This document shows positions 12,901-24,266 of a stretch of DNA of 64,000 nucleotides, piece by piece (position 1 is the first letter of the stretch; each line of letters begins with the position of its first letter). The position numbers and the translations under genes are program-made. The notes beneath the pieces are model-generated. The model was given only the letters and a program-made list of their open reading frames with translations, searched no databases and was not told where the DNA came from. Source of the DNA: Macrostomum lignano (Eukaryota); assembly GCA_002269645.1 (NCBI GenBank), contig NIVC01003473.1, positions 1 through 64,000 on the forward strand, given 5' to 3'.

Positions 12901-15900
12901 GTCTGTCTGTCTGTCTGTCTGTCTGTCTGTCTGTCTGTCTATCTGTCTGTCTTAGTGTCTGTCTGTCTGTCTGTCTGTCTGTCTGTCTGTCTGTCTGTCT
13001 GTCTGTCTGTCTGTCTGTCTGTCTGTCTGTCTGTCTGTCTGTCTGTCTGTCTGTCTGTCTGTCTGTCTGTTCTACTGTCTGTGTGTTTACGTGGACTTTT
13101 TGGAAGTTCAGTAGCCTCGTTAGCTGGACCAACCGGTGTAGGTAGACCACTTAGGTGGACCACCAAATAATTTTGTCTCTGGTGGGGTTAAGACGTTGAT
13201 GAGGATCTCACATTAATGTCAGGCGGGTCAAGAAAGGCTTAAGCAATTTTGGGATGTCTAGCATGGATTTTTCCAAAGTTATTTGCATTTCAGTTTAGCT
13301 GGACCTCCAGCCTGGTCTACCTAAACCGAGCGAGTCTGGTCCACGTAAACCGAAAAATTTTAGAAAATTTTTCGAAAATCGTCTGTTTGTGTCTGTTTGT
13401 GTCTGTTTGTGTCTGTTTGTGTCTGTTTGTGTATAGCAGTTATTAAGCATAGATTCGATGCAAAACTGAATTTTTTACAGATCATTACCTTACGAACAAA
13501 GGGCTATGTTGGCATCATATTATGACCGCTACTGGCTTTAAAACAATATGCGTTCAGTTCTTTGACATTCAAGTAGGTGCGCAGGTTAATTAAAAATTCT
13601 GAAACCTCGTATGCGAAATGAATTTGATACAGTAAACTTTAAACTCCATTTAATTAGCTCAGTTCCAGCAATTCCGGTATCGTACTCTGAGCACAGACTC
13701 ACAGAGTAAGACACCAACGTAAAGAAATCCAATTCGCTAACCAGATCAAACGATAAAGACTCCGAGACAAGAAAGATATTTAAGTGAAGCTTAAATAGTA
13801 TTCTTCAATGACTTCTCAAGAACTCCCAGTGGTCCTTGATAGCCACACTGTGTAAATGCGAATTTCTGAGGCTCTACCATTACACAAGAAGAAAATAGCA
13901 ACTTCATGAATTAAGTGCTTGCCAATTCTATCCTAAACACTATGGGATATCCTGTTCTATCCTCCTCCAATGTTGGAAGAAGAAGATCCTAAGCTGCAGC
14001 CTTTCAAGTGCAAAGTTGAAGATGCAATTTACCTAATTGAAAAGGACAATTCATACATGTACATGCAAAAGATTTGATCAAGAGGACGCAATTAAGAAGG
14101 GCCTTTTAGCTAGCGATCGGGTCTCTGACTCTCTAGCAAAAGGTCGACTTGATTGCGGTCCCAGTAAAACTAAGAACGCATTAACAGTCAGCCTAACACT
14201 CACTGTCTGTTTGGTCCTCGTAAACACATGTGCAGGAGTATAGGGTTGGAACAGACAGACAGACAGACCTCCCTTTCTATAATTGGCTGGTTAACACTTA
14301 GGAGGATAGATCCACCCCAACAATGGGACCGACCGCAGCCAATAGGAAACCCGCAAGCGTTCTGAAGGTAAGACAGTGGAGAGAGGGATATATAATGTCT
14401 AAGCGGGTGGTCCACGTAAACCATGGCGTAGTGAGACCAGACACAGACAGTTTAAAAGAAAGTACTTATAATCCATACTATACAACTCTAAAGGATTGCA
14501 ATTGTATAGATTAGAACGGTTTTTTTTATACTTAATAGGTCTAATGTTAATCCTTACTCCAAGTTTCATCCATATATAAATTTATTGTGCCAAAAACTGT
14601 AATCTACAACCAAGATATGATGACCCGCAAAAAAGGACGCCAAGCCTAAAATAAAAACTAAAAAAACACCGTCGCAAAAAGCCACTGCGAAATCGAAGAA
14701 GCCGCATCGCCTGGTGAAAATCATCAGTCTGCTCGCAAATCCGTCGACACCGAGTCCAGAAAAGTGAGTTTCGTTTGATGATCTCAAAGTAGCTAGCTGC
14801 AAGGCCTGCAACTCAATTGCTGTAGAGAAGCTGGTCCACCTAACCTACAGACACAACTGAATCAGCTCTCTCAGTCTGTTTGAGGCTTTGGCTCTCAGAA
14901 GGTGGTCCACCTAACCTACAGACACAACTCGAACAGATTTCTCTGTCTGTTTAGGCTCTGGCTCTCAGAGCCGCCGAGAAAGTTTAGTGCCGAGAATGCT
15001 TCAGTTTGTTAGAATGCAATCAGAACATATTCCTAGAAAGTGAGCTAGTCCAGCATCGAGGTAGAACATCTGGATGTGTAACGAGAGGCTCTCGAAGATT
15101 CCTGGCTCAGATTATCGCCTAGAAGTGCTGTGGAGTAGCTGGTCCACCTAACCTACAGACACAACTCGAACAGATTTCTCTGTCTGTTTAGGGCTCTGGC
15201 TCTTAGGTGGTCCACATAACCTACAGACACAACTGAAGCAGCTCTCTCAGTCTGTTTGAGGCTTTGGCTCTCAGTAGCTGGTCCACCTAACCTACAGACA
15301 CATCTCGAACAGATTTCTCTGTCTGTTTGAGGCTCTGGCTCTCAGAGCCGCCGAGAAAGTTTAGTGCCGAGAATGCTTCAGTTTGTTAGAATGCAATCAG
15401 AACAGATTCCTAGAAAGTGAGCTAGTCCAGCATCAAGGCAGAACATCTGGATGTGTAACGAAAGTCTCTCGGAGACTCCTGGCTCAGATTATCGCCTAGA
15501 AGTGCTGTAGAATAGCTGGTCCACCTAACCTACAGACACAACTCGAACAGATTTCTCTGTCTGTTTGAAGCTCTGGCTCTCAGAGCCGCCGAGAAAGTTT
15601 AGTGCCGAGAATGCTTCAGTTTGTTAGAATGCAATCAGAACAGATTCCTAGAAAGTGAGCTAGTCCAGCATCAAGGCAGAACATCTGGATGTGTAACGAA
15701 AGTCTCTCGGAGACTCCTGGCTCAGATTATCGCCTAGAAGTGCTGTGGAGTAGCTGGTCCACCTAACCTACAGACACAACTCGAACAGATTTCTGTCTGT
15801 TTGAGGCTCTGGCTCTCAGAGCCGCCGAGAAAGTTTAGTGCCGAGAATGCTTCAGTTTGTTAGAATGCAATCAGAACAGATTCCTAGAAAGTGAGCTAGT

Positions 15901-21900: not shown

Positions 21901-24266
21901 TTATCTGTTCTATTTGAGAATTTCTGTTTTAATTAGTTCAAAAGAACAGTTTAAAGCAATAAATTTTCTACAACGAAAGAGGTCTAACTAAACCAACTGT
22001 TTTTTTGCGGTCCACCTAACCCGGTCCCCAAAACGTAGTTAGTGAACCACCACAGTTTCCCCGAACTGGCTATTCCGTCAAGTTAACAAAAAGATAACCC
22101 TAGCTAGCCTTTCGCGTTGTCAAAACAGACTCTATTTTTTAACCGGAATTGCGTGGTCCACGTAACGCATTAACATAACTCAGGTCCCGCTAAACACACA
22201 GACAGTCGTAAGAGTGTCTGTCTGTCTGTCTGTCTGTCTGTCTGTCTGTCTGTCTGTCTGTCTGTCTGTCTGTCTGTCTGTGCCTCGATATCTTGCTCCT
22301 GCTTCAATTTCCCGCAGTGGAGGACTGCAGGCCGGAGGACGTGGCCCAGTCTCTTGTGAGCTCCTTCATCATCAACTTCATGAACGTGGTGACATTCCTG
22401 GCTTGCTTTGAAGGGATTCGCAACGTCTTCTTTGGGGGCAACTTTTTCCAGCACGAGTTTGCCCGCCAGGAGGTGGTGAAATTTAGCAAGCTGTTCGGCG
22501 CTTCTGTGAGTTTTGTTGCCAGTTTAGGCTTGCGAACTCTCGGTGCCTTTGAATTTGACTGAAAGGTTTTCTATCGCATTACAGTCCCCTCAGGCCAATT
22601 TTTGCTCCGAGCGTCATGTCTTCATATCCCCGAAACTCACCGAAACTCCCGGAAATTCCATGAAACTCCATGAAACTCCCTGAAACTCCATGAAACTCCC
22701 TGAAACTCCATGAAACTCCCTGAAACTCCATGAAACTCCCTGAAACTCCATGAAACTCCCTGAAACTCCATGAATCTCCCTGAAACTCCCTGAATCTCCC
22801 TGAAACTCCATGAATCTCCCTGAAACTCCATGAAACTCCCTGAAACTCCCTGAATCTCCCTGAAACTCCCTGAAACTCCCTGAAACTCACCTAAACTCAC
22901 CGAAACTCCCTGGAACTCCTTGAAACTCCCTGAAACTCCATGAATCTCCCTGAAACTACATGAAACTCCCTGAAACTCTCTGAAGCTCTATGAAACTCCC
23001 TGAAACTCCCTGAAACTCCCTGAAACTCCCTGAAGCTCCATGAAACTCCCTGAAACTCTCTGAAGCTCCATGAAACTCCCTGAAACTCCCTGAAACTCCC
23101 TGAAACTCACCTAAACTCACCGAAACTCCCTGGAACTCCTTGAAACTCCCTGAAACTTCATGAATCTCCCTGAAACTACATGAAACTCCCTGAAACTCTC
23201 TGAAGCTCCATGAAACTCCCTGAAACTCCATGAAACTCCCTGAAACTCCCTGAAGCTCCATGAAACTCCCTGAAACTCTCTGAAGCTCCATGAAACTCCC
23301 TGAAACTCCCTGAAACTCCCTGAAACTCCCTGAAACTCACCTAAACTCACCGAAACTCCCTGGAACTCCTTGAAACTCCCTGAAACTCCATGAATCTCCC
23401 TGAAACTACATGAAACTCCCTGAAACTCTCTGAAGCTCCATGAAACTCCCTGAAACTCCATGAAACTCCCTGAAACTCCCTGAAGCTCCATGAAACTCCC
23501 TGAAACTCACCTAAACTCACCGAAACTCCCTGGAACTCCTTGAAACTCCCTGAAACTCCATGAATCTCCCTGAAACTACATGAAACTCCCTGAAACTCTC
23601 TGAAGCTCCATGAAACTCCCTGAAACTCCCTGAAACTCCCTGAAACTCCCTGAAGCTCCATGAAACTCCCTGAAACTCTCTGAAGCTCCATGAAACTCCC
23701 TGAAACTCCCTGAAACTCCCTGAAACTCCCTGAAGCTCCATGAAACTCCCTGAAACTCTCTGAAGCTCCATGAAACTCCCTGAAACTCCCTGAAACTCCC
23801 TGAAACTCCCTGAAACTCCCTGAAGCTCCCTGAAACTCCATGAAACTCCCTGAAGCTCTATGAAACTCCCTGAAACTCCCTGAAACTCCCTGAAACTCCC
23901 TGAAACTCCCTGAAACTCCCTGAAACTCCCTGAAACTCCCTGAAACTCCTTGAAACTCCTTGAAACTCTCTGAAACTCCCTGAAACTCCCTGAAACTCCC
24001 TGAAACTCCCTGAAACTCCCTGAAACTCTCTGAAACTCCCTGAAACTCTCTGAATCTCCCTGAAACTTTTTGAAATATCCAATGGCACAAAACCGTGTGC
24101 ATATACTCGTAAACATCCTGAATCCCTTCAGAGCGTCATGAGCTTCAATTTTCTCAAGACCGGCCACACAGCCGCCCTGGGTGCCGCTCTGGCCTCTCCA
24201 AGTGACGTGGTGGACTTTTTCGCCGCCATGAAAGTTGCCGACCTTGGCCGCTCGTCGCAACAGTGA
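9985..24266 (+). CDS. Divergent type II (eukaryotic) pantothenate kinase-like protein, 376 aa; exons 9985-10081, 10369-10576, 11539-11785, 12176-12431, 22318-22505, 24132-24266
   Basis: All introns GT-AG with compatible phases; total 1131 nt, open. PanK-like blocks in order: [79 protein letters not shown]. Confidence 0.82.
10620..11495. repeat. 20-bp minisatellite (GATTGTGTCAGATTGTTAGA)n, PanK-like intron 2
   Basis: Direct tandem repeats. Confidence 0.95.
11845..12115. repeat. ~24-bp minisatellite (GATGATGGCGCCAAATTTCC..)n, PanK-like intron 3
   Basis: Direct tandem repeats. Confidence 0.9.
12440..13070. repeat. (TGTC)n microsatellite
   Basis: Direct reading. Confidence 0.97.
13074..22206. 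mobile_element. Putative non-autonomous DNA transposon (~9.1 kb) bounded by inverted repeats, with an internal satellite
   Basis: ACTGTCTGTGTGTTTA (13074-13089) is a perfect 16-bp inverted repeat of TAAACACACAGACAGT (22191-22206), extending imperfectly to ~22 bp. GGTCCAC(G/C)TAA motifs occur in opposite orientation at the two ends. Both sides are flanked by (TGTC)n. No transposase ORF and no clear TSD. Confidence 0.55.
14828..21185. repeat. 238-bp satellite array (21 long units) with interspersed ~65-70-bp sub-units
   Basis: Unit spacing 15283>15521>15759 = 238 bp. GCCGCCGAG marker counted 21 times. Short sub-units share GGTCCACCTAACCTACAGACAC...TGTCTGTTTGAGGCT. Confidence 0.95.
22205..22282. 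repeat. (TGTC)n microsatellite
   Basis: Direct reading. Confidence 0.9.
22630..24066. repeat. 10-bp minisatellite (TGAAACTCCC)n, PanK-like intron 5
   Basis: Direct tandem repeats. Confidence 0.97.

Follow-up and report, generated by a model that had tools for sequence, protein, structure and literature searches.

A 64,000-nucleotide stretch of Macrostomum lignano DNA (contig NIVC01003473.1 of assembly GCA_002269645.1, positions 1 to 64,000 of the forward strand; hereafter, the window) carries, inside an intron of its pantothenate-kinase (PANK) gene, a real, recently active, non-coding mobile element that is present in about 120-140 copies in the genome. The mobile unit spans positions 13068-22214, lies in a pre-existing (TGTC)n microsatellite and contains a large satellite array. 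It represents one copy of a young family of non-autonomous DNA transposons, designated A1, with two sister families, A2 and B. From their sequence organization, the three families may provisionally be classed as non-autonomous elements of the Helentron/Helitron2 (HLE2) type, similar to HINE and DINE-1. No description of this element family was found in the literature on M. lignano that we searched.

Each end of the element (307 nt on the left, 257 nt on the right) had more than 140 candidate places in the genome, and the 40 that were scored were 99-100% identical. The 5' repeat, with up to two mismatches, yielded 143 genome matches (one in the control); the 3' repeat followed by its linker and in-phase TGTC units yielded 120 (none in the control), and a generic pattern of the 3' hairpin yielded 132. 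In every copy checked, both ends were located on the same contig, in the same order and on the same strand, 4.9-18.3 kb apart. Across nine copies read from end to end, both arms (left, 1.75 kb; right, 1.0 kb) were the same, with a pairwise arm identity of 96.4-99.9% (98.2-99.9% for the right arm), and only the length of the array varied. No open reading frame (ORF) in the arms matched a Pfam family. A preliminary description of the window had proposed a non-autonomous element, an idea tied to ends that co-occur elsewhere; the constant pairing of the ends, the non-coding arms, the 120-143 copies (96-99.9% identical) and the existence of empty sites on duplicated or allelic contigs all bear it out. 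The pattern counts, which are assembly-wide, are redundant: the copy in the window and that on contig C4225 correspond to the same insertion event, and the Mlig_3_7 assembly (DV1 line) is known to be redundant owing to extra large chromosomes. Independent insertions are therefore fewer than matches. The idea that nothing here is mobile, and that the inverted repeat arose by chance from microsatellite-like sequence around a local satellite, retains practically no probability. The outer 10 nt of the repeat are indeed microsatellite-like, but ends with 300 and 250 nt of unique sequence recur, paired and 99-100% identical, between unique flanks on dozens of contigs, and empty sites were found.

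The ends are marked by a 23-nt inverted repeat formed by ACTGTCTGTGTGTTTACGTGGAC (13074-13096, plus strand) and GTCCCGCTAAACACACAGACAGT (22184-22206), with 20 of the 23 positions paired (87%) and the outer 16 nt perfect, in keeping with the 16-bp perfect, about 22-bp imperfect repeat described previously. Taken from 22183 to 22206 (plus strand), the 3' repeat reads GGTCCCGCTAAACACACAGACAGT. The limits first given for the element, 13074-22206, are those of the inverted repeat but not its true ends, which lie 6 nt further out on the left and 8 nt on the right. These nucleotides, the 5' linker TGTTCT (13068-13073, plus strand) and the 3' linker CGTAAGAG (22207-22214, plus strand), were identical in all of the nine family-A copies and are therefore part of the element. 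The mobile unit is thus TGTTCT, followed by 13074-22206 and CGTAAGAG. In 103 genome matches, the 5' linker was found in phase after TGTCTGTC. In rare copies, the final base of the repeat was followed by CGTA, GGTA or TGTA, and GGTA is also the 3' linker of family B; these variants (TCGTA, TGGTA, CTGTA) suggest a common core, …CAGACAG-YNGTA, to which AGAG would have been added in family A. The inverted repeat is consequently subterminal, with constant, non-complementary linkers outside it (6 + 8 nt in family A, 6 + 4 nt in family B). The outer 10 nt of the two repeats (ACTGTCTGTG and CACAGACAGT) are microsatellite-like and correspond to the complement of the target repeat. A 3' terminal hairpin is predicted at 22194-22225 (plus strand), in which ACACAGACAG of the repeat pairs across the linker with the first TGTC units of the flank, so that it overlaps the 3' repeat and draws on the flanking array; its support is modest (z = -2.4 in families A and B, with 4/200 and 7/200 shuffles as good).

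The two (TGTC)n tracts that had been noticed on either side of the element were confirmed at 12448-13067 and 22215-22281 (both plus strand) as the left and right halves of the target array. The left half includes TGCC, TTTC, TATC and TTAG variant units and begins 16 nt past the 5' splice site (GTGAGT at 12432); beyond the right half, the last intron nucleotide is 22317 (CCCGCAG), and exon sequence starts again at 22318. All of the 16 copies examined were inside (TGTC)n, in one and the same orientation, and in-phase TGTC units abutted 103 5' ends and 120 3' ends. Because element-free (TGTC)n arrays account for only about 1.5% of the window sequence, such a distribution is not due to chance. Outside the arrays, the flanking sequence was unique. 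When joined, the outer flanks retrieved element-free versions of four loci, including the PANK intron, from duplicated or allelic contigs, with plain (TGTC)n in place of the element. In its two empty alleles (contigs C1567 and C283), this intron reads GTGAGTCTGTTGTCTC (TGTC)35-61 TGCC (TGTC)4-7 CGTC TGTGCC…CAG. The CGTC unit, beside the 3' end of the array in both of them, is lacking in the occupied allele. The empty copies of the C29 locus had their variant units in the order given by the left plus the right arrays of the occupied copy. Moreover, private patterns of variant units were common to both flanks of single copies (L001, L006, B-L011 and B-L016) and, in L001 and L006, extended to 0-3 units from the linkers. 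That the microsatellites belong to the element is ruled out by the unique outer flanks, by the plain arrays at empty sites and by these locus-private variants on both sides up to the linkers. The element thus integrates into pre-existing (TGTC)n arrays, in one orientation and without visible change of the target; the microsatellite targeting initially suspected is borne out by the empty sites and by the variants common to both flanks.

No target duplication was seen, and any duplication of 4n nt or TG + 4n nt would be masked by the 4-nt periodicity of the target. An 8-nt duplication, equal to two TGTC units, could thus be hidden if the element were a non-autonomous cut-and-paste (DDE) transposon, for example of the hAT, P or CACTA type, whose enzyme bound GGTCCAC and preferred (TGTC)n. 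The 23-nt inverted repeat, the several subterminal motifs mirrored at both ends and the in-phase flanks, which fit a 4n-nt duplication, would agree with such an origin, and tandem repeats are also known in Foldback/Galileo-type elements. We nevertheless consider it unlikely: terminal inverted repeats of cut-and-paste elements lie at the very termini, whereas constant, non-complementary linkers stand outside the repeat in every copy, and strict orientation (16/16 copies, 103-120 junctions) is not expected of symmetric ends. In addition, a search for linker-to-linker excision footprints gave no match in the genome, and no transposase gene was found between such ends, a weak hAT-like stretch in A2 having no Pfam match.

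The same junctions bear on a rather improbable alternative, in which a recombinase or simple annealing would drive the insertion: the ACAGACAG and TGTCTGTG ends would anneal to a (TGTC)n array that was broken or under replication, followed by template switching or break-induced synthesis from another copy. In its favour, the target is complementary to the ends and shows no detectable duplication, no partner gene was found, and some head-to-tail copies are separated only by short arrays. The occupied PANK allele also has about 400 bp more array than the empty alleles, with other variant units. However, the private variants that come to within 0-3 units of the linkers in L001 and L006 indicate that little or no donor array was co-transferred, and accidents of repair would not usually leave 120-140 copies whose junctions are precise and identical. 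Between families that have otherwise diverged, moreover, the ends, motif copies and foldback structure have been kept, which points to a sequence-specific protein.

The head-to-tail pairs were observed at C1330:111630-111780 (L062, 11 TGTC units between the copies), C2543:60680-60857 and C1267:127190-127523, the latter consisting of a B copy followed by an A copy; they could result from re-insertion into the flanking array or from tandem production. On contig C103, two family-B right ends (971257 and 973863) were found 2.6 kb apart in the same orientation, with one promoter-like module listed upstream, and represent either a short copy or a duplicated 3' end. TTAG units, which have three differences from TGTC, recurred in the (TGTC)n arrays of many unrelated loci, whether or not the element was present (window positions 4780-5125, 12824-12960 and 30657-30844; L020-L022). 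Since point mutation is not an easy explanation for them, a templated origin or a footprint is possible.

The second distinctive property of the element is its satellite. With up to one mismatch, the end motif GGTCCACSTAAMC matched 45 times in the window, of which 44 fell between 13085 and 22167, as compared with 0.18 expected from shuffles. The motif, GGTCCAC(S)TAA(M)C, is inverted at 13085 and 13293, forward at 13314, 13338, 14213, 14409, 22009 and 22155, and present once per array unit; the far-left copies are therefore inverted, and all others point the same way as the right end. These positions agree with those first reported, except for an inverted copy near 13151 that was recovered only with two mismatches. 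The motif GGTCCAC is a putative transposase-binding site. The satellite array (14826-21187, plus strand) comprises at least 37 units of 68-71 bp or 236-238 bp, each starting with the end motif and ACAGACAC. The 37 motif-bearing units included 21 long (236-238 bp) and 11 short ones (68-71 bp), as well as four 139-bp doublets, all in the orientation of the right end. The start of the unit, GGTCCACCTAACCTACAGACAC, agrees with the 3' inverted repeat in 17 of 24 positions, a closer match than the best of 20,000 background 25-mers. The satellite is thus built from the end motif of the element, as originally proposed. Array length alone explains the range of copy sizes (4.9-18.3 kb), the arms being constant, and the array changes quickly, given that copies differ by 3-15 kb. 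Elsewhere in the window, an array of 20-nt units (GACAGGGGTGTCCACTTAAG) at 47679-48561 contains GTCCACTTAAG, which resembles the element motif, and its last unit (48551) is the only motif match outside the element.

Around the array, the arms display an ordered set of features. The left end is predicted to fold back (13074-13350, plus strand), the inverted motifs (13085, about 13148 and 13293) pairing with the forward ones (13314 and 13338), in the arrangement described for HINE elements as a 5' subterminal inverted repeat plus inverted repeat. The DNA fold reached -49 kcal/mol (z = -5.1), with none of 100 shuffles as good; within it, GGTCCACGTAAAC at 13338 pairs with 13085-13097 at a spacing of about 240 nt. 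Further inward, an internal GTCT-type proto-microsatellite, (GTCTGTTTGT)5, occupies 13381-13432 (plus strand), a position at which family B has an equivalent. An inverted relic of a left end, including the linker and (TGTC)4, was found at 14213-14268 on the minus strand, where GAACAGACAGACAGACAGAC is the exact complement of the left junction; on the plus strand the tract of the relic reads (GACA)4. The second right-end-like sequence that had been reported at 14409-14451 (plus strand), GGTCCACGTAAAC...ACACAGACAGT, is present, and family B has an equivalent at its positions 739-830, approximately. These internal end-like sequences had been taken as a sign of nesting, but more likely represent remnants of older ends within the left arm. 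The right arm (21188-22182, plus strand) contains an acceptor-like sequence, CTACCTTTGTAG (21208-21219), AATAAA signals at 21848 and 21957, and the motifs at 22009 and 22155.

Between the relic and the internal right-end-like sequence, a module made of CAGCCAATAGGA, with a CCAAT box, and GGGATATATAATG, with a TATA box (14336-14397, plus strand), forms islands kept between families A and B where the surrounding sequence has diverged. Its pattern had 121 genome matches (none in the control), all in A1, A2 or B, and its composition suggests a promoter-like function. A donor-like GTGAGT site (14764) lies downstream of the module, and the acceptor-like site (21219) and the AATAAA signals lie beyond the array. 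Judging by these signals (14336-14770 and 21208-21960), a transcript of the element itself may contain the satellite as an intron.

A promoter-like module is one of the points that would favour RNA copying by a microsatellite-specific enzyme of the non-long-terminal-repeat (non-LTR) type, that is, target-primed reverse transcription with (TGTC)n as the 3' tail. Orientation-specific insertion into one microsatellite and a variable repeat at the 3' junction would also be expected, and microsatellite-specific long interspersed nuclear elements (LINEs) of the R1 clade are known. We consider this route very improbable. Since the module is located 1.26 kb inside the element, a transcript starting there would lack the left end, which all copies have. 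There was no excess of 5'-truncated copies (143 left versus 120-132 right ends), and elements of 5-18 kb were full length. The array, although situated between splice-like signals, has been retained, and no role would be left for the inverted repeats or the foldback. Among the properties of elements that depend on non-LTR enzymes, neither a 5' promoter nor frequent 5' truncation was found; only the 3' repeat fits.

Families A2 and B share several features of A1, including the GTCT microsatellite of the left arm and tandem repeats in a fixed orientation. The arms of A2 are 86% identical to those of A1; the element measures 16.3 kb and has arrays of 71-bp units. One copy (L058, C29:550300-560299) contains, at 7727-8575, a 283-aa ORF with a DBF zinc finger (zf-DBF, PF07535, E = 3.5e-9), which, from its sequence, is a captured piece of a gene. 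In the same copy, an inverted 1-kb segment (3887-4873) is 86% identical to sequence located 2.5 kb upstream of the intact C111 Helitron gene described below. Family B is more distant: its similarity to A is restricted to about 100-350 nt on the left and about 150 nt on the right (67-81% identity), its 5' repeat reads …TTTACTTGGAC, its linkers are TGTGTT and GGTA, and its size is 2.7-5.9 kb. Its plan is the same, with (TGTC)n on both sides, a foldback of inverted and then forward motifs (z = -4.7), a CCAAT…TATA module, two right-end-like sequences in the interior, and a right end composed of motif copies, repeat and short linker. At the position of the GTCT-type repeat of A, it carries another of this type, (GTCTGTTKCA)4, and its arrays are made of 78-88-bp and 494-bp units starting with TGGTCCAGCTAACCTACAGAC.

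To account for these features, we favour, at an even level of confidence, a rolling-circle mechanism in which an enzyme of the HLE2 kind (HUH Rep/helicase) would move the element in trans, as for HINE and DINE-1. Strand-specific, single-strand chemistry would result in a single orientation of insertion. The outer 10 nt of both repeats could pair with single-stranded (TGTC)n, thereby choosing target and strand, by analogy with IS200/IS605. The array units, which combine the motif with the ACAGAC part of the 3' module, would have arisen when this module was duplicated, either by slippage or by repeated termination and re-initiation, and grown into a satellite.

In Helentron-associated elements, a subterminal inverted repeat begins 2-4 nt inside the 5' terminus and has a complementary repeat nearby; they also have a left-arm microsatellite, often GTCY or GTCT; central tandem repeats able to become satellites; and a 3' subterminal repeat followed by a palindrome. 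They insert into T-T or oligo-T targets without target duplication, and their partners encode a Rep/helicase with a DUF6570 marker and sometimes OTU or endonuclease domains. In the M. lignano families, 4-6 nt separate the 5' repeat from the conserved 5' end (TGTTCT in family A and TGTGTT in family B), and both a left-arm microsatellite (13381-13432) and central repeats in a fixed orientation (14826-21187) are present. The complementary left-arm repeat is also present, but at about 240 nt instead of the 1-22 nt of described families. Canonical Helitrons (HLE1) do not agree: their 5' TC, 3' CTRR, hairpin 10-12 nt before the 3' end and A-T insertion contrast with TGTTCT...CGTAAGAG ends and a (TGTC)n target. 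The Helentron/DINE-1-like lead of the preliminary description remains the best structural match found, although the families depart from it in their target, which is not T-T, and in their 3' spacing, and no partner sharing their ends was found.

Several results weigh against the rolling-circle HLE2 assignment. The element ends 8-20 nt beyond the 3' repeat instead of 38-60 nt, and the hairpin overlaps the repeat rather than following it; the upper limit of about 20 nt holds because locus-private variants begin 0-3 units past the 8-nt linker. All junctions are in (TGTC)n, a perfect array of which has no TT; the 5' linker contains TT, but the empty sites are nonetheless TGTC arrays. Mirror-wise sets of subterminal motifs at both ends are also typical of cut-and-paste transposons. 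Direct 3'-5' junctions within 30 nt, of the tandem or circle type, were not found, and hairpins within array units were not better than those of shuffles. Finally, searches with the 5' repeat (up to two mismatches), the 3' repeat, the generic 3' hairpin and the promoter-like module detected only A1, A2 and B, with no coding element. The genome yielded 150 matches to Helitron_like_N and 66 to DUF6570, but when these were compared with the end coordinates of A and B, none was adjacent on the same contig. In one HLE2 element on contig C2 (L060, L061 and L063; C2:14200-23099), the portions read, namely 1.5 kb upstream and 2 kb downstream of the gene and short of its termini, had no similarity to the arms.

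Candidate enzymes are nevertheless encoded in the genome. HLE2 genes (DUF6570, Rep and Pif1, some with OTU) are present and intact, and many of the DUF6570 matches correspond to intact frames of 2015-2162 aa; the type P0121 has DUF6570, Rep and Pif1 and no endonuclease. The C2 element includes an OTU-like exon in the 1.5 kb upstream, then a predicted coding sequence (CDS) of about 5.4 kb (C2:15723-21116, placed from P0121), the first 1.2 kb of which, the portion read, encodes DUF6570 and the start of the Rep domain. Directly after the predicted stop there is an array of more than 1.9 kb with a unit of about 18 nt (CCATCCAGTCAGCAA…), unrelated to the array of the element. This C2 element appears to be intact, and recent activity of HLE2 is suggested by the many identical 2015-aa frames elsewhere. 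The C111 canonical Helitron gene is also intact (1617 aa, no DUF6570). It was rejected as a partner, no matching ends being found in the 16.5 kb read, and a (TGTC)9 tract upstream of it was rejected as a boundary, as it is an internal proto-microsatellite and similarity continues upstream. One weak match to DUF6570 (29.5 bits, in a 116-aa frame), probably a decayed HLE2 fragment, lies on the contig of the window but beyond it, at C3473:94304-94570, at a distance of about 72 kb from the element.

The window contains genes for ATP synthase subunit c, an ELOVL elongase, pantothenate kinase and a KCNH channel on the plus strand, and a tetraspanin gene on the minus strand; the subunit c protein shows 92-97% identity to M. 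lignano entries. The PANK exon preceding the element ends at 12431 (…AAGTCGC|GTGAGT), and the next one starts at 22318 after CCCGCAG. With the insertion, the intron grew from a microsatellite of about 250-340 nt to 9.9 kb, the splice sites being untouched, and the promoter-like module and splice-like signals, as predicted, came to lie on the sense strand of the gene. The idea that the element made the intron, as an introner, was ruled out, the intron being present without the element in the empty alleles. The empty intron (L017, C1567:213900-214950; L018, C283:20900-22050) is nearly all (TGTC)n between splice-site sequences, and the arrays of the L002 and L004 copies also adjoin splice-site-like sequence; judging by these cases, short introns of the M. 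lignano genome may often be microsatellites. Tandem repeats made up 42% of the window, and nearly every intron of the ELOVL, pantothenate-kinase and KCNH genes contained a minisatellite of its own, unrelated to the others (arrays of 0.3-1.8 kb with units of 10-57 nt).

In the M. lignano genome, simple and tandem repeats represent 15% of the sequence. The element bears on this figure and on the origin of dispersed satellites, as it illustrates how the end module of a transposon can multiply, forming arrays that reach about 15 kb, and later scatter through genes. In an animal that can be made transgenic, and with occupied and empty sites in one assembly, it also allows clean tests of how a eukaryotic DNA element integrates into a microsatellite with specificity for sequence and strand. 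We also consider, as a tentative and rather doubtful proposal, that the families form a distinct lineage that homes to microsatellites, the outer bases of the ends acting as a guide that pairs with single-stranded (TGTC)n and fixes site and orientation. If true, this would explain the long-noted association of GTCY microsatellites with DINE-1 and HINE from insects to molluscs, and such elements would drive intron growth and dispersed satellites in this repeat-rich genome; the enzyme could be an HLE2 Rep acting on foreign ends or be of some new kind. If the ends do read their target by pairing, the system could in principle be re-aimed, and GTCY microsatellites and HINE elements would be connected across phyla.

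Among known systems, the closest are the HINE and DINE-1 elements, such as Cg_HINE of the Pacific oyster and DINE-1/mini-me of Drosophila. They share with the M. lignano families the asymmetric ends, the subterminal inverted repeat, complementary repeat and GTCY/GTCT microsatellite of the left arm, the central repeats in a fixed orientation, and the inverse repeat and stem-loop of the right arm, as well as the lack of coding capacity and of visible target duplication, although in a (TGTC)n target a duplication of 4n nt or TG + 4n nt would be hidden; the capture of gene fragments, represented here by the zf-DBF piece of A2, is another common trait. However, their targets are T-T or oligo-T instead of (TGTC)n, their inverted repeats measure 11-16 nt versus 23 nt, and their arrays consist of a few units, whereas those described here reach about 15 kb. 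The conserved promoter-like module, the flatworm host and the failure to find a same-ends partner are further differences.

Other systems resemble the element in single aspects. Coates and co-workers are said to have described, in 2010 and 2011, lepidopteran Helitron-like elements that disrupt (GAAA)n microsatellites, and miniature inverted-repeat transposable elements with hitch-hiking (GTCY)n. These elements would likewise be non-autonomous and tied to one tetranucleotide microsatellite; in the present case, empty sites show that the tie is a targeted integration, specific for orientation, into arrays that already existed. The HUH transposases of IS200/IS605 insert in a strand- and orientation-specific manner beside a fixed tetranucleotide, without target duplication; the ends of these elements are asymmetric and have hairpins, and the target is read via base pairing with the element end. 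They are bacterial, about 1-2 kb in size and carry their own gene, and serve here as a working analogy for target choice only. Foldback/Galileo-type elements have internal or terminal tandem repeats built from end sequences, but within long terminal inverted repeats, in contrast with the one-way central array of A1. The R1-clade LINEs Waldo, Mino and Kibi insert into one microsatellite in one orientation, but are coding retroelements with 5' truncation. Satellite-carrying HINE-like elements were already known; what is new is the strict specificity for a microsatellite and for one orientation, the size of the arrays and the flatworm host.

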